This document shows, one piece after another, positions 1-60,148 of a DNA stretch of 64,000 nucleotides. Position 1 is the first letter of the stretch; the number at the start of each line of letters is the position of its first letter. The stretch covers positions 883,370 through 947,369 of the forward strand of contig JAPDFW010000125.1 in the NCBI GenBank assembly GCA_028826165.1, written 5' to 3'. The notes under the pieces are model-generated. The model did no database searches. It worked only from the letters and a program-made list of their open reading frames with translations, and was not told where the DNA came from. This DNA comes from Anaeramoeba ignava BMAN. Its lineage: Eukaryota > Protista > Anaeramoebae. Made by a program: the position numbers and the translations under genes.

Positions 1-767
1 CAAAAGATCAATCAATTCCAATTCAAATTAAACTTCCTAAATTAAGATTTAATGAAAATATTTCTAATTATCATCTTTCTTGTGGAGATTACAAATCATT
101 TTTTTATTATTTACCTCCTTCTTATTCCAATCTTGAAGAAGATTTGATAAAATTATTTAGAAGAAAAGAATTTTGTGATATTTCATTTAAAACAAAAAAT
201 GGAGAAATAATCAAAGCTCATAAATTAATATTAAAATATAGATTAAATCAAAATCAAAATCAAATTGAAAAACTTCAAGAAATTATTTCAAAAAAATCAA
301 TTAAAGAATCAAATCAAATATTTGAAATGATTTATTCAAATAATTCCAAAATAAATCCAAAATTATATTCTGAAATCAAAGAAATTATAAATTCAAATGA
401 AAAAATTGAAGAAACAATTAAAAGAATTTATTTAAATGAAAATGAAAATGAAAAAGATTTTATAATTGAAAGAAAAGAAAAACAATATAAATTTCCAAAA
501 TTAATATTAATAATGAGAAGTGAATTATATCGAGGAATGTTTTTATCTGTAACAGAAGATACTTCTAATAAAGTTACAGATTATAGTGAATTAAGTGATA
601 AATCATTTCAAATATTTGAATATTGGATTTATTCAAATCAAATTAAAGAAGAAATTCAAATTACACAAGAAATAATTAATGAAATTCAAATTGGAATTGA
701 TTATTTTCAATTAAATCAAACAAATCCAAATTTATTTGATTTATTAATTAATAAATTTAATAATTAA
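1..767 (+). CDS. RCC1-repeat/BTB-domain protein, 3' part (5' end outside window)
   Basis: Frame is open from position 3 (KDQSIPIQIKLPKLRFNENISNYHLSCGDYKSFF, an RCC1-like repeat end) into two BTB-like segments (FCDISFKTKNGEIIKAHKLILKYR; KDFIIERKEKQYKFPKLILIMRSELYRGMF...FEYWIYSN). Stop at 765-767. Near-identical inverted copies lie at 60600-62337 and 63120-64000. Confidence 0.8.
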   Translation, partial: KDQSIPIQIKLPKLRFNENISNYHLSCGDYKSFFYYLPPSYSNLEEDLIKLFRRKEFCDISFKTKNGEIIKAHKLILKYRLNQNQNQIEKLQEIISKKSIKESNQIFEMIYSNNSKINPKLYSEIKEIINSNEKIEETIKRIYLNENENEKDFIIERKEKQYKFPKLILIMRSELYRGMFLSVTEDTSNKVTDYSELSDKSFQIFEYWIYSNQIKEEIQITQEIINEIQIGIDYFQLNQTNPNLFDLLINKFNN

Positions 768-17500: not shown

Positions 17501-18399
17501 TTCTTTTGATTTTTATTTAGATTTTTCTTTTGATTTTTATTTAGATTTTTCTTTTGATTATTTGTTTTTGAAGAAAGTAAATTTTGATCACTCTTTGTAA
17601 AAGATTTTAAGTTATTTTCATTTAAATTTGATTTTGTTAAATTTATTTGTAAGTCATCATAATTTTTTGAGTTCTGATTTAATTCATCTTTAGGTTTTTT
17701 TTGAGATTTGAATTTAAGATTTGAGAGATTTTGATTTTAAATGAGATTTTAAATTTTTCTTATTTTGTTTAATTTTTCAAAAATATCAATGAATGATCCA
17801 TCAAAAATGATAGAAAAATGAAAAATAAAAATTAAAAATTAAAAATTTTTGTTTTTGTTTTTCATTTTTTCTTGTTTTTGATTTTTATTATTTTTTTTAT
17901 TTTTAATTGATTTGAATTTTTTTGAAATTGAATCATTAATTGAATTTTCATCCATCTTTGATAATCAATTAAAAATTTTAAGTTATTTTCATTTAATTTT
18001 TGAGTTTTTACAAAACAATCAAAAATATAAATGCAAATTTCCATTTGTTTCTGAATTAATTAAATTTTTGAGTTCTGATTTAATTCAAATCAAAAACAAT
18101 TTAGAGAGGTTTTAATTGAGATCTCAAAAAATAAAAAATCTAAATGAGATTTTGTTTTTAAAAAATGACAAAAATTTTTCTTAAATTTTTCTTTTTTTCT
18201 TTTAATTTTTCCTTTCTTTTTTATTTTATTGTAAAAAAATATAAATGATGAATGATCCATATTATTTTGTTAAAATCTGGAAAATTTTAGAAAAATTAAA
18301 AATAAAAATTAAAAATTAAAAATTTTAACAAATTTTTGTTTTTCATTTTTAATTGTTTTTCTTTAATTTTATTTTAATTTTTAATTATTTAATTTTATT

Positions 18400-20380
18400 T
18401 TTAATAATTGATTATTTTAATAATAATTTTCGATGACAAACAACAATTTTTTAATAAAATTGAATAATTAATTTAATCGTAATTTTAATCCATCATTAAT
18501 AATAATCATTTTAATAATAATTTTAATAATAAAAAATAATTTTAATAATAATTTTAATAATAATTTTTATAAATAATTCCATAAAACTTGAAATTTTTTT
18601 TAGAGTTTTTAAAAACAATCAAAAAAATTAAATAATAATTTTCCATTTTTTTTAATAATTTTAATAATAATTTTAATAATAAAATCGATTTTTTGATTTG
18701 ATTTTAATAAAATTTAAAAATAAATTTATAAAGAATTTTTTTAATTTCTTAATAATTTAATAAAATTTTAATAATAATAAATTTAATAATTTTAATAATA
18801 AATTTTATTTTTGTTTTTAAAAATTTTTTTTGACAAAATTTTTCTTTCTTTTTAATAAATTTAATTTCTTTTTCTTTTTATTCTTTTTCTTTTTTTAATT
18901 TTTTTTTTCTTTTATTTTATTTAATAAAAATTAATTTTTAAATAATAATTTTAATAATAATTTTAATAATAATTTTAATAAAAATTTATAATAATTTTGT
19001 TAAAATTTCGTTAATAATAATTTTAATAATAATTTTATTTAAAAATAATTTAACAAATTTTTTTAAAATTTTAATAATAAATTTTATAATAATTTTATAA
19101 TAATTTTTATAATAATTTTAATAATAATTTTAATAATAATTTTAATAATAATAATTTAATAATAATTTTAATAATAATTTTAATAATAATTTTAATAATA
19201 AATTTTAATAATAATTTTAATAATAAATTTAATAATAATTTTAATAATAATTTTAAATAAATTTTAATAATAAATTTTAATAATAAATTTAATAATAAAT
19301 TTTAATAATAAATTTAATAATAATAATTTAATAATAATTTTATTAATAATTTAATAATAATAATAATTTTAATTAATTTTAATAAAATAATAATTTTTAA
19401 TAATTTTTTAATTTAATAAAATTTTTAATAATAATTTTTAATAATTTAATTTTAATTAATTTTTTTAATAATAATTTAATAATAATTTTAATAATAATTT
19501 TAATAATAAATTTAATAAATTTAATAATAAATTTTAATAATTTTTTAATAATAATTTTAATAATAATTTTAATAATAAATTTAATAATAAATTTTAATAA
19601 TAATTTTAATAATAATAAATTTTAATAATAATTTTAATAATAAATTTTAATAATAAATTTAATAATAAATTTAATAATAAATTTTAATAATAATTTTAAT
19701 AATAAATTTTAATAATAAATTTAATAATAAATTTAATAATAATTTTAATAATAATTTTAATAATAATTTTAATAATAATTTTAATAATAAATTTTAATAA
19801 ATTTTAATAATAATTTTAATAATAATTTAATAATAAATTTAATAATAAATTTAATAATAAATAATAAATTTAATAATAAATTTAATAATAAATTTAATAA
19901 TAAATTTAATAATAATTTAATAATAATAATTTTAATAATAATTTTAATAATAAATTTAATAAATAATTAATAATAAATTTTAATAATAATTTTAATAATA
20001 ATTTTAATAATAAATTTAATAATAAATTTAATAATAAATTTAATAATAAATTTAATAATAAATTTAATAATAATTTTAATAATAATTTAATAATAAATTT
20101 AATAATAATTTTAATAATAATTTTAATAATAATTTTAATAATAATTTTAATAATAATTTTAATAATAATTTTAATAATAATTTTAATAATAATTTTAATT
20201 AATTTTAATAATAAATTTATTAAATAATTTATTAAATAATTTTATAAATAATTTTATAAATAATTTTATAATAATTTTATAAATAATTTTAACAATAAAT
20301 TTAATAATAAATTTAATAATAATTTTAATAATAATTTAATAATAATTTTAATAATAAATTTAATAAATAATTTAATAATA
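18400..20380. repeat. (AATAATAATTTT)n AT microsatellite, probably intron of exportin-T
   Basis: About 2 kb almost free of G and C, ending at the AAG acceptor 20381-20383. Confidence 0.8.
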
Positions 20381-30264: not shown

Positions 30265-30574
30265 AATTCTTTAATTAAATAAAGATTTAGAATTTCTTTT
30301 AAATTTTTGATCAAATTTTGATTAAATTTTTAATTAAATTTCTTTTAAATTTTGACCAAATTTCTTTTAATTTGATCAAATTTAATTTGATTTAATTTAG
30401 ATCGCAGTTTATTTTCAGAATTCCTTTTTAAAATTGATGATTTGGAAAAAAATTTTGTTAAAAATTAAAAATCATTTTTTTTCTTTTTTAATTTTATTTT
30501 TTCTCATTTATTTTCTCATTTATTTTCTCAGTTATTTTAGTGAAAGTTTTTTTTTTATTGAATTGAGAATTCAA

Positions 30575-33500
30575 ATGACAAATTTAGAAAATCAAAATAA
30601 TTTTGGAAATGTTGAAAATTTTGGAAATGTTGAAAATTTTGGAAATGTTGAAAATTTTGGAAATGTTGAAAATTTTGGAAATGCTAATGATTTTGGAAAT
30701 GCTAATAATTTTGGAAATGCTAATGATTTTGGAAATGCTAATAATTTTGGATTTGGTGATACTCAATATGTTTCTGATATGCCAACTGGTAATTTGGGTG
30801 TTGATGGTGCTAATGGTGTTGATGGTGTAGATGGAATAGAAATGGGTGCTTTATCTCCTCAACCTCCTCCTCATTCAAATACTAAACCTATTAAAAATGA
30901 TGGAACTGGACAAAGTTATACTAATTCTGGAGGTTAGTCCTGCAAATTCAAATTCAAATTCTAATTATAATTCTAATTTTAATTTTAATTCTAATTCTAA
31001 TTCATAATTCTAATTTTAATTCTAATTCTAATTTTAATTCTAATTCAAATTCTAATTTTAATTCTAATTTTAATTCTAATTCTAATTCAAATTCTAATCC
31101 AAATTTAAATTCTAATTCTAATTCAAATTCTGATTTTAATTTTAATTCTAATTCAAATTCTAATCCTAATTCTAATTCTAATTCTAATTCCAATTCTAAT
31201 TCTAATTCAAATTCTAATTCTAATTCTAATTTTAATTCTAATTCTAATTTTAATTTTAATTTTAATTTTAATTCTAATTCTAATTCTAATTCTAATTCTA
31301 ATTCTAATTCTAATTTTAATTTTAATTTTAATTTTAATTCTAATTCTAATTAAAATTCTAATTCTAATTTTAATTCAAATTCAAATTCCTAATTTTAATT
31401 CTAATTCTAATTCAAATTTAAGCTTATGATGGTGGTAGTTCAACTTCAGTTTCTAATTTTAATTTTGTAATTTAAGCTTATGAGTAATTTTAATTTTGAA
31501 TCTTTAATTTTAATTTTTAATTTTGAATCTTTAATTTTAATTTTTAATTTTTAATCTTATTCCACTTTTTTTTTTACTTTTATTGATAAATTAGTGATGG
31601 ATGGTATTGATAAATAATTTAAAAAAAATATTCAATTTATTTCAAAATTTATTAATTCCTTTTTATTTATTTATATTATTTTCAAAAAATTTTTTGTGAT
31701 TATTATCAAAATTTAGTTGTGATTGTTGGTAAGTTTTTATTTTAAATATTTGGAAATTTTCATTTTATTCCACTTTTTTTTTTACTTTTATTGATAAATT
31801 AGTGATGGATGGTATTGATAAATAATTTAAAAAAAATATTCAATTTATTCAAAAATTTATTAATTCCTTTTTATTTATTTATATTATTTTCAAAAAATTT
31901 TTTGTGATTATTATCAAAATTTAGTTGTGATTGTTGGTAAGTTTTTATTTTTTATTCCACTTTTTTGGATCATATTAATAAATTAATTTAAAAAAAAATA
32001 ATCAATTTATTCCAAAAATTTATTAATTCCTTTTTATTTATTTATATTATTTGGAAAATTTTTTGTAATTGATTGTGATTATTATCAAAATTTAGTGGAG
32101 ATTGTTGGTAAGTCGTTATTTTTGAAATAATTTTATTTTATTCCACTTTTTTAATTCCACTTTTTTTTTTACTTTTATTGATAAATTAGTGACAGATGGT
32201 ATTTAGAAATAATTTAAAAAAAAATAATCAATTTATTCCAAAAATTTATTAATTCCTTTTTATTTATTTATATTATTTGGAAAATTTTTGTAATTGATTG
32301 TGATTATTATCAAAATTTAGTGGAGATTGTTGGTAAGTCGTTATTTTTGAAATAATTTTATTTTATTCCACTTTTTTAATTCCACTTTTTTTAATTTTAT
32401 TTAGTGAAGACTTTTGGTAAAATATTTTCATTCCAAAAAAAAATAATTTCAATATTAAAAATATTTATTTATTTATTGTTTTATTTTCTGATTATCTCTG
32501 AATACAACTTTTTTTTAGGAGTTGCAAGTAAGTTTTTGCTCTTTTTTTTTAAACAAAACATTTTTTTTTAATTTCTAATTACTTTTTTTTAGTTGCCTGT
32601 AAATATTCTCTTTTTAAAAAACAAAAATTGAAATTCATCTTTTCATTCCAATTTTAAAAATTTTATTTAATTAATTATTTTCATTTTATTTAGTAATTGC
32701 GAGTAATTTAATTTTAAAAAATTTGATCCAAAAATAGAATTTAAATTTTTTAATTTTAATTTTAATTTTAATTTTATTTGTTATTTAGTACTTGCGAGTA
32801 ATAATTTTATTTTAAAATTCTTCAATTTAATTAATAATTTTAATTTTTTTTATTTTCATTTTATTACTTTCTTATCAATTTAGATGTTGTGGAGGGTAAG
32901 TATTTTTAAATATTAATTAAAGAAAACTAAAACTAAAACTAATTTTGAAATTTATCTTTTATTTATTTAGATTTTGCGAGTAATTTTTTTATTTTAAAAT
33001 TTTTTTTTGAATTTTCCCTAATTCCACTTTTTTTTTCTGTTAAAATTTTTCTTTTAATGAATTTAGTTCTTGTGGAAAGTAAGTATTTTTTTAAAAATTG
33101 ATTAAAGAAAACTAAAACTAAAACTAATTTTGAAATTTATCTTTATTAATTTAGATGTTGCGAGTAATTTTTCTATTTTAAAATTCTTCAATTTAATTAA
33201 TAATTTTAATTTTTTTTATTTTCACTTTATTACTTCTTATCAATTTAGATGTTGTGGAGGGTAAGTATTTTTAAATATTAATTAAAGAAAACTAAAACTA
33301 AAGCTAATTTTGAAATTTATCTTTTATTTATTTAGTTGTTTGCAGTAATAATTTCTTTTTTAAATTTTTTTTGAATTTTCCCTAATTCCACTTTTTTTTA
33401 AAATATTAATTTAGATGTTTGGAGTAAAAATTTTCATTTTAATTAATTTTATTTTAAAGAAAACTAAAAAACCTTTATTCTTTTTATTATTCTTATTATA

Positions 33501-33727
33501 AAAAAATAAAAATTCCTTTCTTTTATTAATTTAGTGCTTGCGGGTAATTTATTAATTAATTAATTAATTTATTCAATTCATTTTTTGATAATTCATTTTT
33601 GATAATTTTTTAGAGAGTAAATTAATTTCATTTTCAATTTTCATTTTAATTTTCAATTTAATTTTTATTTTTAATTTAATTTTCATTTTAATTTTTAAAA
33701 TATAGTTGTAATTGTTCAATTTTTTAA
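30575..33727 (+). CDS. Micro-exon gene A: NFGN-repeat N-terminus + Cys-rich tail encoded by 21 symmetric micro-exons, ends in CaaX (CSIF)
   Basis: Exon 1 is 30575-30932. Then 31423-31434 (tentative) and 31477-31483, 21 AG/GT-flanked exons of 3-12 nt from 31595 to 33616, and a last exon 33706-33727. The spliced frame is open (about 200 aa, 30 Cys). Confidence 0.85.
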
Positions 33728-34247
33728 GTTTTATGATCCAAAAATAAAGGAATTTAGGATCGTATTTGGCTTCAATTCTCAAGCAAAATCAAAATCAAAA
33801 ATAAAATTAAAATCTAATTTTAATTTTAATTTTAATTTTAATTTTAATTTTAATTTTAATATTTAATTCCTTATTCAATTCTTTCATTTTAAAGAGATCA
33901 AAACAAAAAGAGTAAAAGAATAAATGGAGGGATTATCTCAATTACAATTTTTCTTCTAAAATAATTATGAAATTTATTTCTTAGATCTCTTCAAAAAAAA
34001 AGAAATAAAAAAATAATGATTCTTATTAAATTAATCCATTTAACAACTTTTTGCTTTTGTTTCGTTTGATTTCCTATTAAAAAAAAATGAGATCAAAAAT
34101 ATTTGAAAAAATGGCAAATAATTTTTTTTTTTGGCATTTTGATGAAAGGATTTTGATGAAAGAATTTTATTTGAGTTCATTTTTTTTTTTCTAAATTATT
34201 TTTGATTTATTTAGTGAAACAATTTATTTTTTTTTTCAATTAAAATT

Positions 34248-37200
34248 ATGCAAGGAAATAATAATAATATTATTCCACAAACAAACCCTGCAATCAATCA
34301 ATTTATGCCTCAACCTCAACCTCAAATTATGCCTCAAGCTCAATTTATGCCCCAAGCTCAACCCCAAATGATGCCTCAAACTTTTTCACCTCAAATTACT
34401 ACTCCAGTTGATCCAAGTATGACACCTAATCAAAACCCAAATGTTTTAGCTCAACATAATCAAGCTCATTCAAATCTAGGCAATACTGGAGGAATGGGTG
34501 GTGGTGGTACTGGACAATCTTATGTAAATTCAGGAGGTAATTAAATATTTAATATTCAAATAAATATTCAAACAAATATTTAATATTCAAATAAATATTC
34601 AATATTCAAATAAATATTCAATATTCAAATAAATATTCAATTAAATATTCAATTCAATATTCAAATAAATATTCAAATTAATATTCAAATAAATATTCAA
34701 ATAAATATTCAAATAAATATTCAAATAAATATTCAATTAAATATTCAATTAAATATTCAATTCAATAAATATTCAAATAAATATTCAAATAAATAATCAA
34801 TTCAAATAAATATTCAAATAAATAATCAATTCAAATAAATAATTAAAATAAATATTCAAATAAATATTCAATTAAATATTCAAATAAATATTCAATTCAA
34901 TATTCAATTAAATATTCAAATAAATATTCAAATAAATATTAAATATTCAAATAAATATCCAAATCAATTGAATTAAATTGTGATCATTTTTTTTGGTTTT
35001 GATTTTTCTTTTAGTTTATGATGGAGGCAATGATTGTTGTTGTTGTTATTGTTATTGTTGTGCTTGCAAGTAAGTTATTTTAAATTAAATTTTCAAATAT
35101 GTTTTTAATTTTGTTTTAATTAATTTTATTTTTATTTTTTTTAGTGGAGATCCGTAAAGAAAAAAAAAATTTTTTTTTCTCTTCTTTGAAAAATTAAAAT
35201 TAAAATTAAAATTAAAAATTAAAATAGTGTTTTTGGATGGTAAAAACAATTTTTTTTTTCCTTCTTTATTGAAAAATTTTTTTTTTGTGAAATTTCTTCA
35301 ATTTTCTACTTTTTTTTTCTTTTCTTTTATTTATTAAATATTCCTTTTTAATTTCAAAATAGTAATTGTGGATTGTAAGTTTTTGTTTTTTTTTTAAAGA
35401 ATAAAAATAATTAATTTACTGATTTATTAATTTAAATTTCTTACTTTAAAAATTTAAAATTAAAATAGATGTTCTTGTGGGTTAGTTCTTATTTTTTTTC
35501 TAAATCTTTTTTTCTATTTTCTAAAATTTAAATAATTTTATTTTAATTATTTAACAAAAAAAAATATTTAAATTTCAGCGATTGTAATTGGTAATTAGTT
35601 CATTTGATTTTTTTTTTGATTAAAAAAAAATAATTTAAAATGTTCCACTTTTTGTTCCACTTTTTTTTAAAATTATTTGCAAAAAAAAAAAATTAAATTT
35701 TAATTTAGTGATGGATGTTGGTAAGTTATATATTTAATTTATTATTTGATATATTTATAAATTTAATCATTTTTATTATTTTCTTCTTTTTTTTTTAAAT
35801 AGTCATCGATGGTAAATTTCTTTCATTTCCTTTTTCAAAAAGAAATAATAAATAAAAATCATTTTCAAATTCATTTTTCAAATTAATTTTATTATTTGGA
35901 AATTAAGTGGTATTTGGTGGTAAGTTAATAGAAAAAATACAAATCCAAATCTTTTTCTAATTAATTCCAAATTTGATTTCAAAATTAAATTAATTCAAAT
36001 TAGTGATCATTGTTTGTAAGTTAATCGAAAAAAATTAATTCTAAATCTTTTTTCTAATTAATTCCAAATTTAATTTCAAAATTAAATTCATTCAAAATTA
36101 ATTGAAATTAGTGAAAATTGTTGGTAAGTTAATTAAAAAAAAAAACTAATTTCCAAAATGAATAAAATGCAAAAAATTTTTATTCCACTTTTTTATTAAA
36201 ATCAAAATAAATTAGTTACGGATGGTAAATTTTAATTTGAATTTTTTATTTCTTATTTATTAAATTGAATTTATTTTAATTTAAATTTCTTTTTGAAATT
36301 TATTATTTGAAATTAGTAATGCTTGTGGGTAAGTTAATTCAAAATCAAAAATAAAATTTTCTAATTAATTTTTTTATTCCACTTTTTTTTTTATTTATTC
36401 CACTTTTTAAGTCAATGCTGGTAAGTTATTTATTTCTTTTTTTAATAAATATTAAATTTAATTATTTATTTATTTTAATTTTTTGAAATCAATTCAATTA
36501 GTCAAGGATGGTAAATTATAATTTTATTTTTTATTTCTGTTTTATTAAATTAAATTAATTTCTTTTTGAAATTATTTCAAATTAGTGATACTTGTTGGTA
36601 AGTTAATTTAAAATTTAATTCAAATTTGAATTTAATTATTTATTTATTTTAATTTTTTAAAATCAAATTAATTAGTCAAGGATGGTAAATTATAATTCTA
36701 TTTTTTATTTCTTATTTATTAAATTAAATTAATTTCTTTTTGAAATTATTTCGAATTAGTGATGCTTGTTGGTAAGTTAATTTAAAATTAAATTCAAATT
36801 TGAATTTAATTATTTATTTATTTTAATTTTTTAAAATCAATTCAATTAGTCAAGGATGGTAAATTATAGTTCTATTTTTTATTTCTTTTTTATTAAATTG
36901 AATTAATTTTAATTTAAATTTCTTTTTAAAATTTATTATTTGAAATTAGTGATGCTTGTGGGTAAGTTAATTTAAAATTAAAAATAAAATTTTCTAATTA
37001 ATTTTTTTGTTCCACTTTTTTTTTTATTTATTCCACTTTTTAAGTCAATGCTGGTAAGCTATTTATTTCTTTTTTTAATAAATATTAAATTTAATTAATT
37101 ATTTATTTTAATTTTTTAAAATCAATTCAATTAGTCAAGGATGGTAAATTATAATTCTATTTTTTATTTCTGTTTTATTAAATTGAATTTATTTTAATTT

Positions 37201-37757
37201 AAATCTCTTTTTGAAAATCAAAATAAATTAGTCAAGGATGGTAAGATAAAATTTTGATTTAATTTAATTTAATTTTGATTTGATTCGTTTTTATTCCTTT
37301 TTTAATTCCATTATTTTTTAGTGATTGTGGAGGATGGTAAGTTTAAATTTTAATTTAATTTTATTTCAAATTAATTTGATTTATTTTTTATTTATTTTTT
37401 TAGTAATTGTGGAGGATGGTAAGTTTAAATTTTAATTCTATTTTATCTCTCATTTCTTTTTTCTTATTTCTTTCTATTTTTTTTAAATTCCATTATTTTA
37501 GTGATTGTGGAGGATGGTAAGTTTAAATTTTAATTGAATTCTCATTTTTAATTAATTTATTTTATTTTTGATTTTATTTTTTTTAGTGATTGTGGAGGGT
37601 AATTTTTTTAGATTAATATTTTGATTTGATTTTATTTTTGGATTGAAAAATCCACAAAAAAAAAAGTGGAACAAAATCAAAAAAAATTTTTTTTAAATCA
37701 AATTTTTTTTTTCTTTTTTAAATAATAATTGATTAATTTAGATGCACAATTAATTAA
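34248..37757 (+). CDS. Micro-exon gene B: P/Q/M-rich N-terminus + Cys-rich tail encoded by 26 symmetric micro-exons, ends in CaaX-like CTIN
   Basis: Exon 1 is 34248-34536 and exon 2 is 35015-35069. Then 26 exons of 9, 12 or 15 nt from 35145 to 37598, and a last exon 37742-37757. The spliced frame is open (216 aa, 45 Cys). Confidence 0.9.
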
Positions 37758-38021
37758 GTTTGATTTATTTCCAAACAAATTTTTAGCAAAGAAATGGATA
37801 CTTTTAAACCAAAAAACAAGAATAAGAACGAAATGAATTTTTCTTTTTTTTTTTTTTTTAATTTTATTTTTCTCCTTTTAATTAAAAAATTTTTTTTAAT
37901 TATTTTTCTCCTTTTATTTTTATTTTTTTTTTAAATTAAAAAAAAAATTTTTTTTCTTTTTTTCTTTCTTTTTTTTTTTTTCATTTTTTTACACTTTCAT
38001 TTTTAGATTCATAAACTTAAC

Positions 38022-40401
38022 ATGGCTAGAGGACCAAAAAGACATTTAAAAAGATTAAACGCACCACATAAATGGATGTTGAATAAACTTGGTGGAAGAT
38101 ATGTGTGTTTTACAAATAAAAATCAATATAAATTTAAATTTTAATTTAAATATCAATATAAATTTCAATATAAATTTCAAAATCAATTTCAATATCAATT
38201 TCAAAATCAATATCAATATCAATATCAATATCAATATCAAAATATAATATTAATATCAATTTCAATATCAATTTCAAAATATAATATTAATATCAATTTC
38301 AAAATATAATATTAATATCAATTTCAAAATATAATATTAATATCAATTTCAAAATATAATATTAATATCAATTTCAAAACAAATTAATATAATTATAAAT
38401 ATAAATTTCAAAATCAATTTCAATATAAATTTCAAAATCAATTTCAATATCAATTTCAAAACAAATTAATATAATTATAAATATAAATATAAATATAAAT
38501 ATAAATATAATTATAAATATAAATCTCAAAATCAATTTCAATATCAATTTCAATATCAATTTCAATATCAATTTCAATATCAATTTCAATATCAATTTCA
38601 AAATAAATTTCAATATCAATATCAATTTCAAAATCAATTTCAATATCAATATCAATATCAATATAAATATCAATTTCAATATCAATATCAATTTCAATAT
38701 CAATATCAAAATATAATATAAATATCAATATCAATTTCAATATCAATTTCAAAATATAAAATCAATTTCAAAATCAATTTCAAAATATAATATAAATATC
38801 AATTTCAATATCAATTTCAAAATATAATATTAATATCAATTTCAAAATATAATATTAATATCAATTTCAAAACAAATTAATATAATTATAAATATAAATT
38901 TCAAAATCAATTTCAATATCAATTTCAAAATCAATTTCAAAATCAATTTCAATATCAATTTCAATATAAATTTCAATATCAATATCAATTTCAAAATCAA
39001 TTTCAATATCAATATCAATATCAATATAAATATCAATTTCAATATCAATATCAATTTCAATATCAATATCAAAATATAATATAAATATCAATATCAATTT
39101 CAATATCAATTTCAATATCAATTAATTTCAAAATAAATTTCAAAATAAATTTCAATATAAATATCAATATCAATTTCAATATCAATATCAATATCAATTT
39201 CAATATCAATTTCAATATTAATTTCAATATAAATTTCAATATCAATTTCAAAAATATAAATATAAATATAAATTTCAATATCAATTTCAAAATATAATAT
39301 TAATATCAATATCAATTTCAATATCAATATCAATTTCAATATCAATTTCAATATAAAATATAAATATTAATATAAATATAAATATAAATATAAATATAAA
39401 TATAAATATAAATATAAATATAAATATAAATATAAATATAAATATAAATATAAATATAATTATAAATATAAATATAAATATAAATATAAATCTAAAAATA
39501 AATATAAATATAAATTTAATTAAATTTAATTAATTATCTTTTTTATTAGGCTCCAAGACCTTCAACAGGTCCACATAAATTAAGAGAATCTTTACCTTTA
39601 ATTATTCTTCTTAGAAACAAACTCAAATATGCATTAACAAGTCGAGAAGTTATGCTGATTCTCAAACAAAGACTTGTCAAAGTTGATGGAAAAGTTAGAA
39701 CAGATTCAAATTATCCAGCAGGATTTATGGGTTAGTTTTGAATTTTAATTTTTTAAATTAAAAATTTATTTATTTATTCATTTTAATTTTTAAAAATATA
39801 GATGTTATTTCAATTGAAAAAACAAATGAACATTATCGTTTATTATATGATACAAAAGGACGTTTTTTCATTCATTCAATTCCACAAAAAGAAACAAAAG
39901 TAAAAAATATTTATTTTAAATATTTAAATTTATTTTATTTAATTTTAAATATTTATATTTTATTAGTTCAAACTTTGCAAAGTTAAAAAAATCCAACTTG
40001 GACAAAAAGGAATTCCATTCCTTATTACAAATGATGGAAGAACAATTAGATATCCAGATCCACTTATTAAAGCTAATGATACAATTAAACTTGACGTTAC
40101 AACAGGCAAAATTACAAATTTCTGCAAATTTGATATTGGAAATTTAGTAATGGTCACAGGAGGAAGAAACACAGGCAGAATGGGAGTAATTACAAAAAGA
40201 GAAAAACATCAAGGATCATTCGATATTGTTCATATTAAAGATGCTAAAGGTCATGACTTCGTTACTAGAGCTACTAATGTCTTTGTTATTGCTAAAGGAA
40301 AAAAACCTCTTATTTCAATCCCTAAAGATTTTGGAGTTAAATTATCCATCATAGAAGAAAGAGATAAAAGACTGGAAAAATCTCAAAAGAAGAAAAAATA
40401 A
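38022..40401 (+). CDS. RPS4: 40S ribosomal protein S4 (eS4)
   Basis: [20 protein letters not shown]...[17 protein letters not shown]...[17 protein letters not shown]...[12 protein letters not shown]; 3 introns. Confidence 0.97.
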
Positions 40402-52539: not shown

Positions 52540-55500
52540 CTAATTTAATTTTTCTAATTGATTTTTCGCAAATCCATTTTCTGGATCAAGTTTTAAAACA
52601 AATTCAAACATTCCTTTTGCTTCTTCTTTTTCACCTTTTAGATTCAAAATGGTTCCTTTTCTTGTATAAGATTTAACGAATTTTGGATCGATTTGAATAG
52701 ATTTATTACAATCTCTTAAACCATAATCAAAAAGAGACAATTTAGTATAAGCAGCAGCACGATTACTAAAAAGAATAGGATTTTCAGGATCCATTTTAAT
52801 AGCTTCTGTATAAAATTCAAGAGCTTTTTCGAAATTTCCATCATTGAAAAATTCGTTCCCCTTTTTTTTTGCTTCTTCACTTTTTTCTTTATCAAAATGT
52901 TTTTTTTGGAATTCCTCTAATTCTTTCAAGTTTTCTTGAAGCATTTTTGAATTTGGACTCTCTTTCAATCCTTTTGTGAATGTTTCTTCTGCTTCTTTGT
53001 ATAATCCTTGGAGATATAAACTTGTCCCTAATCTATGATATCCTTTATCCCATTCTTTTTTGATTGAAATTACTTTTTTCGCGTCTTGTTCGGATTCAAT
53101 AAGTTTGTTTAATTTCAGGAAGGTTGCGCTGCGATTGCTGTATAAAATGTGATTGTTTGGATCTAGTTCGATTCCGCGTGTGAATAATTTTATTGCTTGT
53201 TGGTAATCTCCTTTTTGGAAAAATTCATTTCCTTTTGTTTTACATTGCATTGGCTTTATAAAATTATTAATAAAATCAATTATAAAATTAAATATAAAAT
53301 TATATATAAAATTATTTATAAAATTAATTATAAAATTATATATAAAATTATTTATAAAATTATTTATAAAATTATTTATAAATTTATTTATAAATTTATT
53401 TATAAAATTAAATATTAAATTATATATAAAATTAATTATAAAATTATTTATAAAATTATTTATAAAATTATTTATAAAATTATTTATAAAATTATTTATA
53501 AAATTATTTATAAATTTATTTATAAATTTATTTATAAAATTAAATATTAAATTATATATAAAATTAATTATAAAATTATTTATAAAATTATTTATAAAAT
53601 TATTTATAAAATTATTTATAAAATTATTTATAAAATTATTTATAAAATTATTTATAAAATTATATATAAAATTATTTATAAAATTATTTATAAAATTATT
53701 TATAAAATTATTTATTAAATTATTTATAAAATTATTTATTAAATTATTTATTAAATTATTTATAAAATTATTTATTAAATTATTTATAAAATTATTTATA
53801 AAATTATTTATAAAATTATTTATTAAATTATTTATAAAATTATTTATTAAATTATTTATAAAATTATTTATAAAATTAAATATAAAATTAAATATAAAAT
53901 TATATATAAAATTATTTATTAAATTATTTATAAAATTAAATATAAAATTAAATATAAAATTAAATATAATATTAAATATAAAATTAAATATAAAATTATA
54001 TATAAAATTATTTATTAAATTTATTATAAAAATTATTTATAAAATTAAATATAAAATTATTTATAAAATTAAATATAAAATTATTTATAAAATTAAATAT
54101 AAAATTATTTATAAAATTATTTATAAAATTATATATAAAATTATTTATAAAATTATATATAAAATTATTTATAAAATTATTTATAAAATTATATATAAAA
54201 TTATTTATAAATTTATTTATAAATTTATTATAAAATTATTTATAAAATTATTTATAAAATTATTTATAAAATTATTTATAAAATTATTTATAAAATTATT
54301 TATAAAATTATTTATAAAATTATTTATAAAATTATTTATAAAATTATTTATAAAATTAAATATAAAATTAATTATAAAATTAATTATAAATTTATTTATA
54401 AAATTAAATATAAAATTATTTATAAAATTATTTATAAAATTATTTATGAAATTATTTATAAAATTATTTATAAAATTATTTATAAAATTAAATATAAAAT
54501 TAAATATAAAATTAATTATAAAATTATTTATAAAATTTATAAAATTAATTATAAAATTAAATATAAAATTATTTATAAAATTATTTATAAAATTATTTAT
54601 AAAATTATTTATAAAATTAAATATAAAATTATATAAAATTATATATAAAATTATTTATAAAATTAATTATAAAAATTATATATAAAATTATTTATAAAAT
54701 TATTTATAAATTTATTTATAAATTTATTTATAAAATTAATTATAAAATTATTTATAAAATTATTTATAAAATTATTTATAAAATTATTTATAAAATTATT
54801 TATAAAATTATTTATAAAATTATTTATAAAAATTATATATAAAATTATTTATAAAATTATTTATAAAATTATTTATAAAATTATTTATTAAATTATTTAT
54901 AAAATTATTTATTAAATTATTTATTAAATTATTTATAAAATTATTTATTAAATTATTTATAAAATTATTTATAAAATTATTTATAAAATTATTTATTAAA
55001 TTATTTATAAAATTATTTATTAAATTATTTATAAAATTATTTATAAAATTAAATATAAAATTAAATATAAAATTATATATAAAATTATTTATTAAATTAT
55101 TTATAAAATTAAATATAAAATTAAATATAAAATTAAATATAATATTAAATATAAAATTAAATATAAAATTATATATAAAATTATTTATTAAATTTATTAT
55201 AAAATTATTTATAAAATTAAATATAAAATTATTTATAAAATTAAATATAAAATTATTTATAAAATTAAATATAAAATTATTTATAAAATTATTTATAAAA
55301 TTATATATAAAATTATTTATAAAATTATATATAAAATTATTTATAAAATTATTTATAAAATTATATATAAAATTATTTATAAATTTATTTATAAATTTAT
55401 TATAAAATTATTTATAAAATTATTTATAAAATTATTTATAAAATTATTTATAAAATTATTTATAAAATTATTTATAAAATTATTTATAAAATTATTTATA

Positions 55501-56378
55501 AAATTATTTATAAAATTATTTATAAAATTATTTATAAAATTAAATATAAAATTAATTATAAAATTAATTATAAATTTATTTATAAAATTAAATATAAAAT
55601 TATTTATAAAATTATTTATAAAATTATTTATGAAATTATTTATAAAATTATTTATAAAATTATTTATAAAATTAAATATAAAATTAAATATAAAATTAAT
55701 TATAAAATTATTTATAAAATTATTTATAAAATTAATTATAAAATTAAATATAAAATTATTTATAAAATTATTTATAAAATTATTTATAAAATTATTTATA
55801 AAATTAATTATAAAATTATTAATAAAATTAAATATAAAATTATTTATAAAATTATTTATAAATTTATTAAATAATTTACATCCTAAAAAAGAAATGAAAT
55901 TAAAATTAAAATTATTTATAAAATTATTAATAAAATTATTTACATTTGGAATTGGATCAACAGCATATTTTTGAACAGCTTGAGTTAATTTATTTATATC
56001 AGCACCAGGAAATTGAAATAAAAGTTTTTTATTAAGATAAAAAGAAAAAGTTGGCATTGCTTGAATTTTATAAGTTGCAGCAAGAAAATTCTGTTCATCA
56101 ACATCAACATGTAAAAATATAACATTTGGATATTGCTGACTTAATTTTTGATAATAAGGTTCAATCATTTTACAAGGACCACCTTTTAAAAAATAAACAA
56201 AAATTTTTTTTAATTAAATTTTTTATTTAGATTTTTTTTTGAATAGTCAGTTTTTTTTTGGATTGTTTTTTTATTATTTCTTACACCAATCTGCTGTCCA
56301 TTTAATTACAATAAGTTGATCAGGGGTATTTAAAATATTATCGAATTGAGTTGAACTTGTAATATTTTCAATACTCAT
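52540..56378 (-). CDS. Thioredoxin (WCGPC)-TPR fusion protein
   Basis: Exon 1 from ATG 56378 (...KWTADWC) and exon 2 (GPCKMIEP...QAMPTFSF...VDPIPN, ends 55944). Then a 3-nt exon GAT at 55882-55880, a 2.6-kb intron and a last exon from 53253 with Sti1-like TPRs (KGNEFF...YSNRSA; KGNEFF...FSNRAAAY). Confidence 0.82.
53260..55870. repeat. Intronic 12-bp repeat (TATAAAATTATT)n
   Basis: 2.6 kb almost purely A/T, with an internal duplication of about 1.18 kb. Confidence 0.9.
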
Positions 56379-56474: not shown

Positions 56475-59400
56475 TTAATTCAAATTTGATTCCCTCAAAA
56501 TTAAATCAATTATGGAATTGGGATTTAATTGATAAAAATCTTTTAAATCTAAAAACTCTTCTATAATTTCTTTTTTAATTTCTTTTGAAAATTTATCGTG
56601 ATAAAGAAAATAAATTAATTCTTGAATTGTTTCAAATGATTTTCTTGAATAATCATGAACTTGATTTGATGAATCTTGAACATTTAATTGAAACATCCCT
56701 TTAAATAACTCACTTCTTAAAATTAATATTATTTTATGAACTTTGATTTCTTTTTCTTCAACAATTATTGTAAAATCTTTGGTTTCATTTCTTTCATATA
56801 ATTTCCCAAAATCTTTAATTATTCCTTTTATTCCTTTTTTTTGATTTATCCAATTTGAATCAAATCCAATTTCTTTGAAAAATTCTGGAATTGGATTGAT
56901 TTCTTCTTTTGATTTTCTTCTGTTTTATTTTTGTTTTGAAACAATCTGCTCATACATTTCTTCAAAATTGACAAATCCTGTATAAAGAAAATTTATAGCA
57001 TTCTCAACCTCTGTTTTTGATTTCTCATGGCAAATATCAACAAACTTTTGCAAAATCGATTCATCGTTGTCGAACCGTGTCAAAAGAATCAGTTTATGCA
57101 CTTTGAATCTAGAAGAATCAATTGATTGAATTTGATAATCTGAAAAACACCATTTGATTTTAATAAATTGCTTAAATCTTGATTGAATGAATAAACTTGA
57201 GAGAATAATTGAATAAATTGTTTTTGAGATTTGATCTTCTTTTCAAATTGGAAGTAGTAGCTCCACTCATCAATAGTAATCGAATTAATATCCCATTTCC
57301 GTTCCGAATCGATGATGAAAGAGGCGATGAATTTTCATGTGTTAATCCATCGACATCAGCGCCATTATCAATGAAGTATTTGATAATTTCAAGTGATGAA
57401 TTCATATAACAAGCAAAAAATAACGCTGATTGATTTTGGTTTGTTTTCGCATGAATATCAGCACCTTTTTCAATTAAATATTGTATCGTTTGAGACTGAG
57501 ATTTGCGGCAAGCAAAATGCAAAGCGGTTTCATCTCTCGTAGTTTTTGCATTGATATCAACCCCTTTTTCAACAAAATATTTAATCACATCAAACGGTAA
57601 ACCTCTTAAACAAGCAAGGTGCAAAACCGTTTCATCTTGATTTGTTTTTGCATTAACATCAGCCCCCTTTTCAATCAGATATCGAATAAATTCAGTCGAT
57701 CTTCTTTGACATGCAAAATGCAAAATAGTGGAATTGTTGTTTGTTTTTGCATTAATATCAGCTCCCTTCGCAATTAAATATTCCACAATTTTGGGTTTTC
57801 GAGAATTTTCGAAGGCAGAATGCAAAGGTGTTTGGTTGCTATTTGTTCTTGAATTGATATCAATCCCATTTTCAATAAGATACTGAATAGTTTTAAGCGA
57901 TTTATTTTGACATGCAAAATGCAAAGTTGTGTAATCGCGATTTGTTTTTGCATTAATATCAGCTCCCTTTTCAATAAGATACTTGGTAATTCTAAACGAT
58001 GCACTTTGGCATGCATAATGCAAAATTGTTTGATCATGAATTGTTTTTGCATTCACATCAGCTCCATTTTCCACCAAATATTCCACAATTTCAAATGGAG
58101 AACTATTCTGACAAACAAAATGCAAAGCTGTGTAATTTATATTAGTTTGTGCGTTAACATCAACACCACTTTCAATCAAATATTTAACAGCATCCAAAGA
58201 TGGGTAATTATCACAAGTCAAGTGTAAAACAGTTTCATTCCTAATAGTCTTTTCATGGATATCAAGTCCTTTCTCAACGAAATACTTTATAATTTCTAAT
58301 GACACATTTTCCCACGAAGCAAGATGAAGAGCGGTTTGATTTTGACTTGTTTTCGCCTGAATATCGACCCCACTTTCAACTAGATATTTGACAAATTCAA
58401 GCGAATTATTGTGAAAAGCATAATGCAAAACTGTTTCATTTCCGTGATTTTTTGCATTAATATCAAGTCCTTTTCCAATTAAATATCTCATAATTTCAAG
58501 AGACGAAATATTTTGACAAGCTGAAAATAAGGCTGTTTCATTTTCACTTGTTTTCGCCTGAATATCAACCCCACTTTCAACTAGATATTTGACAACTTCA
58601 AGCGAATTATTTCGACAAGCGCGATGCAAAAATAGTTTCATCATTAGCTGTTTTGGCATGAATATCAAGTCCCTTTTCAATAAGAAATTTTACCACTTCT
58701 AACGAGTGGTATTGACAAACAAAATGCAAAGCTGTTTCATTTGCTCTAGTTGTGGCATGAACATCAATTCCATTTTCAACTAACAACCGTATAATTTCAA
58801 ACGATGGGTTAGTTTCACAAGCAATATGCAACGCAGTTTCGCCATATGTCGATTTTGTATTGATATCAAGTTGGTTCTCAATTAAAAATTCAACAATTTC
58901 TGGTGTGGATTTACTTTCACAAGCAAAATGGAGTATTGTTTCATTGTAACTTGTTTTTTCATTAAAATCACATCCCTTTGATATTAAAAATTTTATCATA
59001 TCTAATGATGTATTTTGGGAGCCAAAATGCAAAATTGATTCATTCCAAATTGTTTTCGCATTCACATCAGCTCCCATTTCAATAAGATATCTCATAACTT
59101 CATTTGAATTATTCCCACAAGCTAAATGCAAAGCTGTTCGATTTTGGTTTGTTTTTTCATTGACATCTAATCCCTTTTTAATGAGAAATTCAATAACTTC
59201 AATAGAGTTATTTTTACAAGCAAAATGCAAAGCTGTTTGATTTTGGTTTGTTTTTTCATTGACATCTAATCCCTTTTTAATAAGAAATTCAATAACTTCA
59301 ATAGAGTTATTTTTACAAGCAAAATGTAAAGCTGTTTGATTTTGATGTGTTTTTGCTTTAAGATCAAGTCCTTTTTGAATAAGAAATTCAATAACTTCAA

Positions 59401-60148
59401 TAGAATTATTTTGACAAGCAAAATGTAAAGCTGTTTGATTTCTAAATGTTTTGGCTTTAAGATCAAGTCCTTTTTCAATAAGAAATTCAATAACTTCAAT
59501 GGAATTATTCCCACAAGCTAAATGTAAATTTGTTTGATTTCTTTCCATGACTTCATTAAGATCAAGTCCTTTTTCAATAAGAAATTCAATAACTTCAATA
59601 GAATTATTTTGACAAGCAAAATGTAAAGCTGTTTGATTTTTAATTGTTTTTGCTTTAAGATCAAGTCCTTTTTGAATAAGAAATTCAATCACTTCAAGTG
59701 AATTATTTTGACAAGCTAAATGCAAATTTGTCAATTGATTTTTCGTAAAAGTGAAGAACCAAAAAGTCTTTTCATTCAAATCAAGTCCTTTTTCAATAAG
59801 AAATTCAATCACTTCAAGCGAGCTATATTGAAAAAGCTAAATTTAAAATTCCTTTTCCTTTTTGTCTTTTGCATAAATGTTAATATTTTGGGAAATTAAA
59901 AAATTAAGTGTTTCAATCCCTAATTTATTCATAACCGCAATATGTAATGCATTCATCCCTTTTTTATCCACTTGATTTTCATTTGTTCCTTTTGAAATTA
60001 ATAATTCAATCATTTCTTTGGAAACTTTTTTTTCAATTACAAAGTTTAAAATTGGTTTTTCGTTTTTCTCTAATTCTTTTTCTGAAATGAAATCAATTTT
60101 TTTCAATAATTCAATGTTATTTTGTTCAATAATTTGCCAGATATTCAT
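56475..60148 (-). CDS. Ankyrin-repeat + BTB protein (frameshifted in this assembly)
   Basis: More than 25 ankyrin repeats (TALHFACQNNSIEVIEFLIEKG), followed by BTB segments (SDYQI...VHKLILLTR; KDFTIIVEEKEIKVHKIILILRSELFKGMF). Frame breaks near 59830, 58640, 57200 and 56920. Confidence 0.8.

Follow-up and report, generated by a model that had tools for sequence, protein, structure and literature searches.

Gene B of the protist Anaeramoeba ignava and its neighbour, gene A, very probably encode a metallothionein-like Cys-rich tail by means of tiny exons, as read from the DNA. Gene B lies in a window of 64 kb (the whole stretch of DNA that was analysed) and consists, in order, of a conventional exon 1, a 55-nt exon 2, 26 symmetric micro-exons, each 9-15 nt long, and a short terminal exon. 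Taken whole, the observations are best explained by a real protein-coding gene with 29 exons, for which we estimate a probability of about 0.8. Joining the pieces with a local script gives a 651-nt CDS that encodes 216 aa and contains a single stop, the terminal one. Intron definition would splice the pieces into this single frame by removing 27 short GT-AG introns in phase 2, and the predicted product is a 216-aa protein in which a disordered head is followed by a 120-aa Cys/Gly-rich tail. The micro-exon layout is absent from the published description of the A. ignava genome (PMC11550330). The parts of gene B are as follows.

34248..34536, + strand: exon 1, ATG and 96 codons of a P/Q-rich low-complexity head; the next intron is in phase 1
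34537..35014, + strand: intron 1, 478 nt, GTAATT...TTTAG
35015..35069, + strand: exon 2, 55 nt, (V)YDGGND and then the Cys run CCCCYCYCCAC
35145..35153, + strand: micro-exon 1, 9 nt
35228..35239, + strand: micro-exon 2, 12 nt
35363..35374, + strand: micro-exon 3, 12 nt
35469..35480, + strand: micro-exon 4, 12 nt; first base A, donor GTTAGT
35579..35590, + strand: micro-exon 5, 12 nt; first base C
35709..35720, + strand: micro-exon 6, 12 nt
35803..35811, + strand: micro-exon 7, 9 nt
35908..35919, + strand: micro-exon 8, 12 nt
36004..36015, + strand: micro-exon 9, 12 nt
36112..36123, + strand: micro-exon 10, 12 nt
36216..36224, + strand: micro-exon 11, 9 nt
36317..36328, + strand: micro-exon 12, 12 nt
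36412..36420, + strand: micro-exon 13, 9 nt
36502..36510, + strand: micro-exon 14, 9 nt
36586..36597, + strand: micro-exon 15, 12 nt
36676..36684, + strand: micro-exon 16, 9 nt
36760..36771, + strand: micro-exon 17, 12 nt
36850..36858, + strand: micro-exon 18, 9 nt
36950..36961, + strand: micro-exon 19, 12 nt
37045..37053, + strand: micro-exon 20, 9 nt
37135..37143, + strand: micro-exon 21, 9 nt
37232..37240, + strand: micro-exon 22, 9 nt
37322..37336, + strand: micro-exon 23, 15 nt
37404..37418, + strand: micro-exon 24, 15 nt
37502..37516, + strand: micro-exon 25, 15 nt
37587..37598, + strand: micro-exon 26, 12 nt; donor GTAATT; if unspliced, the frame ends after Gly at TAA
37742..37757, + strand: terminal coding piece, (G)CTIN and TAA, after a 143-nt intron
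36225..37586, + strand: young part of the array, with exon+intron units tandemly duplicated in nested fashion

The 26 micro-exons had been proposed in an earlier note on this DNA, and every interval given there is preceded by AG and followed by GT. The tail translation in the note is identical to that of the independently joined model, and its counts of exon edges were also borne out: TG stands at the end of 19/26 micro-exons and T at the start of 24/26. Ten micro-exons are 9 nt long, 13 are 12 nt and three are 15 nt. Their donors are GTAAGT (14), GTAAAT (6), GTAATT (3) and, for the rest, other GTAAxx/GTTAGT forms, and their acceptors are ATTAG, TTTAG, AATAG, TTAAG or TTCAG. All 28 introns are GT-AG, and introns 2-28 are all in phase 2, with lengths of 67-143 nt (median 83) and 11.55% GC, against 40.9% GC in the micro-exons. 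Published A. ignava BMAN introns have a modal length of 76 nt, 8.14% GC and 99.8% GT-AG ends (PMC11550330); in GT-AG ends, length and GC the gene B introns are thus of the ordinary spliceosomal type of this species. About 34 tandem copies of a 12-nt repeat (34551-34968) fill most of intron 1. Of the exons in the model, the last one is the least certain.

The micro-exon islands are not a chance pattern. A scan for AG-(3..30)-GTWA over 35080-37760 returned the micro-exons with their nested sub-matches and nothing else, and 42 of the 47 AG..GTWA islands on the + strand of the window fall in genes A and B. There is no island in the gene B array whose length is not a multiple of three, while the intron lengths, which divide 12/7/8 by their remainder modulo 3, show no 3-periodicity. 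Outside the splice positions, G makes up 61/2381 nt of the introns and 98/291 nt of the exons; the introns contain no other G+C-rich 9-mers except TTCCAC motifs. Across the joined micro-exons, the G+C content of codon positions 1, 2 and 3 is 0.47/0.67/0.06, and this periodicity continues through every junction. The same holds for the old exons 3-13 (0.41/0.61/0.07), around which the introns are no more alike than shuffled sequence. When bases were shuffled within exons, the frame was open in 9/20,000 trials. It is worth adding that a second frame, rich in V/I/L/D, is also open along the whole chain, and openness alone is therefore weak evidence.

Long runs of short exons with similarly sized introns between them also recall a non-coding host gene for intron-derived small RNAs, like the snoRNA host genes with many tiny exons, and a conserved TTCCACTTTTT motif is present in several introns. 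Such a host gene is most improbable here: the introns, at about 88% A+T, have diverged freely, and the codon-position periodicity of the exons runs on from the ATG-initiated frame. No Rfam family reaches its gathering score within 30300-38200. The sole match, at 32678-32703 inside gene A, concerns a CRISPR direct-repeat model and scores 22.8 bits (E 0.98) where the cut-off is 45. ARAGORN likewise detected no tRNA within the region. Because the Rfam match is at chance level and there is no tRNA, the snoRNA-host idea was dropped.

Gene A, the upstream paralogue, is laid out as follows.

30575..33729, + strand: gene A, 22 micro-exons including a 7-nt exon
30575-30932, + strand: exon 1 of gene A
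31477-31483, + strand: 7-nt exon of gene A (uncertain), followed by 21 micro-exons (3-12 nt each) and a short terminal exon

Downstream of the 7-nt exon all introns of gene A are in phase 2, and the model gives 196 aa, with a 77-aa tail containing 30 Cys (39%). There is no conventional Cys exon in gene A; every Cys is in the micro-exons. Its introns cannot be aligned with those of gene B, and it has its own independent internal duplications. Exon 1 of gene B ends in a conserved GTGQSYVNSG(G), common to gene A with synonymous differences, and the hinge peptide GTGQSYxNSGG-xYDGG is kept between the two genes through GGA/GGT, AGT/TCT (Ser), TCT/TCA, GGT/GGA and GGT/GGC. The hinge of gene A is under purifying selection. 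The exon 2 region of gene A is duplicated and apparently disrupted.

The organism's own genome was searched over its 147 contigs (42,843,398 bp). The hinge motif was found at this locus alone, as were two micro-exon patterns, and a generic pattern of two consecutive 6-15/9-nt micro-exons occurs genome-wide in genes A and B only. About 190 DNA matches to the array were also found, at 65-69% identity; the loci inspected are A+T-rich low complexity, with no micro-exon islands, and were rejected. In the HSP70 family of the same genome, examined as a possible control, exon matches abut with no residues missing, so that the family provides none. An ankyrin gene in the window has a 1-nt frameshift, not micro-exons. 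The locus is adjoined by an exportin-T ORF, for which a word-index search gave no match at E <= 1e-20.

The micro-exon model is strongly, if indirectly, supported by the splice sites, intron sizes, lengths in multiples of three, phase 2, G+C periodicity and the paralogue, and these also bear on a simpler reading of the locus. If the exon 2 donor were unused, the frame would run on for one more codon and the protein would end ...CCACK at the TAA inside that donor. Gene B could then encode a short protein of about 115 aa, consisting of the P/Q head and the Cys run, with the array left over as a neutral minisatellite or 3' region that is not spliced. A P/Q-rich head with a C-terminal Cys cluster does resemble CYSTM proteins (PMC2804304). 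We consider this very unlikely. The donor of exon 2, in phase 2, is a perfect GTAAGT, and a neutral array with introns of 8-12% GC should lose its G+C islands, its multiples of three and its periodicity, whereas the oldest units keep all of them. Moreover, the Cys residues of gene A are all in micro-exons, and yet its hinge is under purifying selection.

The array of a spliced gene B grew by tandem duplication of exon+intron units, as shown by the nested repeats. In the young part the periods are about 82-98, 174 and 285 nt, and intron pairs are 79-96% identical. Each unit carries its splice sites, an exon of 3n nt and the same phase, and gain or loss of a unit is therefore frame-neutral, adding or removing one Cys module. 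Identity between young duplicates is 0.79 in exons and 0.81 in introns, so that constraint in them can be read only from frame and length, splice sites and the composition of codon positions. Repeat copy number may be off in a long-read assembly.

Could such a gene be recently dead or silent, a pseudogene before decay? The product of neither gene is found in very large protein collections, including transcript-derived proteins, and an exact-product look-up (the unspliced exon-1 product and the neighbouring ORF) returned no record, although these collections may omit records of the organism's own genome. The state of the exon 2 region of gene A points in the same direction. Gene B itself, however, has 29 exons with no stops, frameshifts or broken splice sites, and very recent duplications (96% identity) still follow the rules. 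A dead gene is accordingly a very improbable explanation, and a living, spliced gene is preferred.

The earlier note had stated that splicing itself creates the Cys codons. As a description this is correct, since the junction codons of gene B are TGT in 19/27 cases, split as TG-T. It is not a mechanism: the simplest cause is that the junction codons are the footprint of one phase-2 intron within a TGT codon, inherited by tandem copying. In gene A many junction codons are GA-T, GA-A or GG-A (Asp, Glu or Gly) and the Cys codons lie inside exons; the rule common to the two genes is therefore phase and a length of 3n, not Cys at the junction.

The note also held that most skip junctions form Cys and that skipping keeps the frame. 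All 378 forward joins of gene B were computed, of which 216 give Cys and 358 are stop-free. The frame is indeed kept, but 20/378 joins create TGA, so that not every skip is stop-free. This is relevant to the idea that the array is a combinatorial splicing device, in which regulated skipping would change both the length of the tail and the spacing of its Cys residues. In its favour, each of the 26 exons is symmetric (3n, with phase 2 on both sides), the joins have the properties just given, and schistosome micro-exon genes, the nearest analogue, are reported to vary their proteins by skipping symmetric micro-exons. The symmetry, however, is an automatic by-product of the tandem duplication of one unit, strong and uniform splice sites favour constitutive inclusion, and 20 joins create TGA; a combinatorial device is therefore improbable.

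A related and rather doubtful proposal is that the array is a length-tunable, splice-encoded Cys tail, in which skipping, intron retention or premature 3' ends would yield graded metal- or thiol-binding tails. Unspliced donors of gene B read xxG-TAA, giving one residue and then a stop. If the proposal were true, there would be 27 truncation positions and a graded series of tails from a single gene, and an exon+intron minisatellite would change tail length by unequal crossing-over with the frame never broken. This would be a new way to build and tune a repeat protein in a protist.

The tail predicted when all exons of gene B are joined has 120 aa, with 45 Cys (37.5%), 24 Gly (20%) and 12 Asp, and with CC, CxC and CxxC motifs; there are also 2 His, and the aromatics amount to 4 Tyr, 2 Phe and 1 Trp. 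Metallothioneins, which hold metal ions in thiolate clusters and are induced by metals, have approximately 15-35% Cys in CC/CxC/CxxC motifs and few aromatic residues, and the predicted product has a composition of this kind. On composition, the tail might serve for metal-thiolate binding or thiol buffering, in the manner of a metallothionein, or else as a palmitoylated cysteine string, borne on a disordered head, at odds that we put at a little under even. Pfam gave no match in exon 1 of gene B. A phmmer search with this exon against 1.84 billion representatives found no relative, the one match being spurious (E 1.6e-4), and a word-index search with exon 1 of gene A likewise found no relative.

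If confirmed, gene B would have one of the highest densities of micro-exons of any known gene (26 in a row, of 9-15 nt, with 22 of 3-12 nt in gene A), and the first such gene outside flatworms with an entire Cys-rich metallothionein-like domain. It would imply that an intron-definition spliceosome tolerates long chains of tiny exons, and that duplication of exon+intron modules is a frame-safe way for repeat proteins to grow. A. ignava is an anaerobe with sulfate-reducing symbionts, and a very Cys-rich cytosolic protein could plausibly take part in the handling of metals, sulfide or redox state in such a symbiont-housing anaerobe. Genes of this kind will probably escape standard RNA-seq aligners and annotation pipelines. 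The published A. ignava annotation used strand-specific 100-nt reads mapped with HISAT2 (PMC11550330), and one such read would span about eight micro-exons of gene B.

Three known systems come closest. CYSTM proteins are small, with an N-terminal part rich in P/Q/G/Y and then a C-terminal Cys cluster (PMC2804304). In CYSTM this cluster is part of a hydrophobic transmembrane helix placed right at the C-terminus, whereas the Cys run of gene B has about 100 polar Cys/Gly/Asp residues after it, and the supported frame contains no hydrophobic segment. Even the unspliced ...CCACK cluster is not hydrophobic, and gene B thus lacks a tail anchor of the PF12734 type.

The modular metallothioneins (family 7 of ciliates, and the multi-modular proteins of Oikopleura and molluscs) have very high Cys, CC/CxC/CxxC motifs and few aromatics, and, like gene B, are built of repeats that are gained and lost through internal tandem duplication (PMC1808422, PMC4862169, PMC8283569). 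Gene B differs in having a 96-aa P/Q-rich head ahead of the tail, and in placing each module of 3-5 residues on its own exon. The likeness is one of composition, no sequence homology being detected in searches with exon 1, and metal binding is putative.

The micro-exon layout is known mainly from the schistosome micro-exon genes (MEGs). These are reported to have consecutive symmetric 3n micro-exons after a conventional first exon, any of which can be dropped with no frameshift, and the families arose by duplication (10.1101/2023.06.21.545858, PMC4350168). In a MEG much of the CDS is in consecutive micro-exons of <=36 nt and 3n, with conventional exons on both sides; in gene B the micro-exons account for 291/651 nt of the CDS and lie between exons 1-2 and the terminal exon, so that in both most of the downstream coding region consists of consecutive symmetric 3n micro-exons. 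MEGs, however, belong to animals; their introns reach 5 kb, and their products carry signal peptides and are secreted. Exon 1 of gene B starts with MQGNNNNIIPQTNP, which on inspection is polar and has no hydrophobic core, giving a head with no signal-like start; its introns 2-28 measure 67-143 nt, and gene B belongs to a protist that is anaerobic and free-living. The two are unrelated in sequence, and the likeness is in the gene layout as read from DNA. What sets gene B apart is a product that is a Cys/Gly/Asp-rich repeat, encoded in units that are still recognisable as tandem copies.

Gene B is a real feature of this DNA: its anatomy, its statistics, its paralogue and its duplication history can all be read directly from the sequence, and we put the probability that the gene model is right at about 0.8. 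An earlier note had placed 26 micro-exons between more conventional end exons. All 26 intervals stand: every one has AG directly before it and GT directly after it, and measures 9, 12 or 15 nt. The remaining pieces are as follows.

34248-34536, plus strand: gene B exon 1, ending in phase 1
35015-35069, plus strand: gene B exon 2, ending in phase 2
37742-37757, plus strand: last piece of gene B, carrying the stop codon

When assembled by a local script directly from the window sequence, these give a coding sequence of 651 nt, translating into 216 amino acids with the sole stop at the end. The tail, from exon 2 onward, has 120 residues, including 45 Cys (41 TGT and 4 TGC), 24 Gly and 12 Asp, and is identical to the one read in the earlier note. 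The counts behind the further claim that splicing itself creates Cys codons are also borne out: 19 of 26 micro-exons end in TG, 24 of 26 start with T, and TGT is the codon at 19 of the 27 junctions. That the gene is silent or dying is improbable, since nothing is broken over 29 exons.

A scan of 35080-37760 for AG-(3..30 nt)-GT[AT]A, unfiltered for length and composition, returned only the 26 micro-exons and nested sub-matches. All 26 have lengths divisible by three, while the 27 intervening introns split 12/7/8 over the residues modulo 3. The micro-exons of gene B have a G+C content of 40.9%, compared to 11.5% for the introns, and G occupies 98 of 291 micro-exon nucleotides but 61 of 2381 intron nucleotides (outside splice-site positions); any further G+C-rich 9-mer in the introns is a copy of a TTCCAC motif. 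When the bases were shuffled within each exon, the frame was open in 9 of 20,000 trials. On the plus strand of the 64-kb window, 42 of 47 islands of the same kind fall in gene B and its upstream paralogue, gene A, and the 11 on the minus strand are scattered.

The window as a whole has 16–18% G+C, with exon-like islands at 23–31%. The A. ignava BMAN genome comprises 42,843,398 bp in 147 scaffolds (Table S1, PMC11550330) and is 80.65% A+T; its 32,108 counted introns have a modal length of 76 nt, 8.14% G+C and 99.8% GT-AG boundaries (PMC11550330). Two 2-kb stretches, at 54001-56000 and 18001-20000, have G+C contents of 1.1% and 5.0%, extreme even for A. ignava. A large ankyrin-repeat gene on the minus strand (ORFs 58607-59812 and 57172-58680) has a 1-nt frame change at a T-run within a repeat (58600-58690), explained either by a homopolymer error in the assembly or by the gene being a pseudogene; there are no micro-exons at this site.

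Once the micro-exons are joined, the G+C fractions at codon positions 1/2/3 are 0.47/0.67/0.06. G and C persist solely where a Cys, Gly or Asp codon requires them, the third position being at the genome's neutral level, and the pattern is visible only when the pieces are joined as predicted. Introns 2–9, 12, 24, 26 and 28 (numbered from the one following exon 1) resemble no other intron more closely than shuffled sequence does (baseline 0.56 ± 0.05). Exons 3–13, which lie among diverged introns, nevertheless have values of 0.41/0.61/0.07, with 12% G+C in the adjoining introns, and the codon signature is therefore not merely the legacy of a recent ancestral unit. In a genome pushed so strongly towards A+T, islands evolving neutrally would have eroded. 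It could be proposed that translation gives a short protein ending ...CCACK, at a TAA inside the first donor, and that the array downstream is neutral. This is very unlikely, because it conflicts with the 3n lengths, the G+C islands and the codon periodicity persisting in old units, and also with gene A, where the Cys residues are all in micro-exons.

A second frame, rich in V, I, L and D, is likewise open along the entire gene B chain. Its third-position G+C would be 0.47, compared to 0.10–0.27 in real genes here, and the Cys frame is fixed, too, by comparison of genes A and B. It is worth adding that a GTAAAT donor at 34524-34529, which precedes the donor of exon 1 by 13 nt, would leave exon 1 in phase 0. 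In the frame thus entered, which spans 35015-37790, exon 2 and the 26 micro-exons are open and V/I/L/D-rich, with a membrane-like character, ending about 30 codons beyond the annotated stop; gene A has no counterpart of this donor. The open V/I/L/D frame is probably a by-product of the TGT/GAT-rich composition, and not dual coding.

Gene A lies 3.7 kb upstream of gene B, and shares with it a hinge peptide, GTGQSYxNSGG-xYDGG, which a genome-wide search found in these two genes only. Its first exon is the following (slashes mark exon boundaries here and below).

30575-30932, plus strand: gene A exon 1, ending GTGQSYTNSG/G (GTGQSYVNSG/G in gene B)

The hinge codons differ synonymously between A and B (GGA for GGT, AGT for TCT in Ser, TCT for TCA), and xYDGG follows the long first intron in both, with third-position differences (GGT for GGA, GGT for GGC). 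In gene A a 7-nt exon then sets phase 2 and is followed by 21 micro-exons of 3–12 nt, all 3n and all in phase 2, giving a model of 196 residues with a tail of 77 residues and 30 Cys. The introns of the two genes are unalignable (their identity averages 0.59, where shuffled sequence gives 0.56), and gene A contains young internal duplicates of its own, with identities of up to 99%. The two arrays have thus expanded independently, and in both of them the exons have stayed 3n long and in phase 2. Over the second half of gene A, most junction codons are GA/T, GA/A or GG/A, with the Cys codons internal, and the rule common to both genes is therefore frame and phase rather than junction-made Cys.

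Simple tandem repeats, unrelated in sequence but matching in position, fill both first introns: in gene B (34551-34968) a unit of 12 nt is repeated about 34 times, and in gene A (about 30945-31400) the repeats are AATTCT-like hexamers. The start of exon 2 of gene A (aag/CTTATGA...) is present twice, at 31423-31483. The first copy reads YDGGSS... and then meets a stop or the wrong phase, and the second is the 7-nt exon leading into the Cys frame; this may reflect a local duplication with internal deletion, or alternative forms of exon 2.

Tandem Repeats Finder identified nested periods in gene B of 97 nt (1.8 copies), 174 nt (2.7–3 copies, 88–94% matches), 285 nt (2.2 copies), and 82 and 98 nt (about 2 copies each). 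Intron pairs 14/21, 15/22, 16/18 and 17/19 are 95–96% identical, with lower values for 13/20/23 (85–91%), 25/27 (86%) and 10/11 (79%). Growth of the array therefore proceeds through the duplication of blocks, each made up of one to three exon-plus-intron units. In young homologous units the exons are no better conserved than the intron interiors (identity 0.79 vs 0.81), and introns that resemble each other may follow exons of 9 or 12 nt. Where exon lengths in these units differ, the difference is always 3 nt, while the intron alignments contain many indels of any size. What is constrained is the frame, the Cys codons and the splice sites, and the residues between cysteines are free to vary. 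The earlier note had further suggested combinatorial exon skipping. The arithmetic would allow it, 358 of 378 joins being stop-free (216 give Cys, and 20 give TGA), but exon symmetry arises automatically when one unit duplicates, and we consider such skipping rather unlikely.

The pattern TG/GTAAGT...TAG/T...TG/GTAA has 6 matches, all at the A/B locus, and none in controls. A generic two-micro-exon pattern (TAG-N6-15-GTAAGT-N55-85-TAG-N9-GTAA) has 7 matches genome-wide, all in genes A and B, with none outside them on either strand, compared to 16–17 per strand for the reversed control, a hint of depletion of cryptic splice-site pairs in the genome. The array DNA has many matches elsewhere at 65–69% identity, in plain A+T-rich sequence, and micro-exon islands were absent at the loci inspected. 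Large protein collections hold no relatives of exon 1 of either gene, and look-ups for exact products gave no match in collections that may lack entries from A. ignava itself. The Anaeramoeba genome paper (PMC11550330) makes no mention of micro-exons, and a full-text literature search for Anaeramoeba together with microexon returned zero papers.

The window also contains 22 copies of TTCCACTTTTT, against 0.2 expected, at the following positions.

31560-33396, 35643-37041, 9766 and 13744, plus strand: TTCCACTTTTT copies
37661, 9842 and 13329/13340, minus strand: TTCCACTTTTT copies

Sixteen are sense-oriented within the introns of genes A and B, mostly 0–43 nt upstream of the acceptor, and further copies are found flanking the ends of two genes that converge near 9.8 kb. 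The 12-nt form, TTCCACTTTTTT, has 3035 copies genome-wide, often arranged in arrays with regular spacing, compared to 126 for the reversed control. The motif may act as a branch-site or polypyrimidine element, or else as a 3′-end signal. That gene B is a non-coding host for intronic RNAs is scarcely credible: the introns are about 88% A+T, the region has no tRNA, and no Rfam family reached its gathering score, the sole match, inside gene A, being at chance level (E 0.98).

In the protein-coding model, the introns would be removed, as their size, composition and boundaries match those of the genome's ordinary introns. Introns this short are usually recognised by intron definition, and tiny exons therefore need not hinder splicing. 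If the introns are removed, translation must run through the whole chain, since it contains no stop. With phase 2 and GTAA donors, an unspliced donor reads one further codon, in most cases TGG or GGG, before TAA, so that failed splicing at any step would yield a cleanly truncated tail. The putative function is a reasoned guess: by composition, the tail may be a metal-thiolate or thiol-buffering domain, similar to metallothionein, or a cysteine string bearing many acyl groups. The head that carries it is P/Q-rich, presumably disordered, and lacks a signal peptide.

Among known architectures, the closest is that of the schistosome micro-exon genes, which like gene B have symmetric micro-exons between conventional end exons, but differ in having long introns, secreted products, and units without a tandem-repeat relationship. 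CYSTM proteins have a similar layout of P/Q head and Cys cluster (PMC2804304), although their cluster sits in a hydrophobic tail anchor (PMC2804304), which gene B does not have. Among known product classes, the closest is the modular metallothioneins, which, like the gene B tail, grow through internal tandem duplication (PMC1808422, PMC4862169, PMC8283569).
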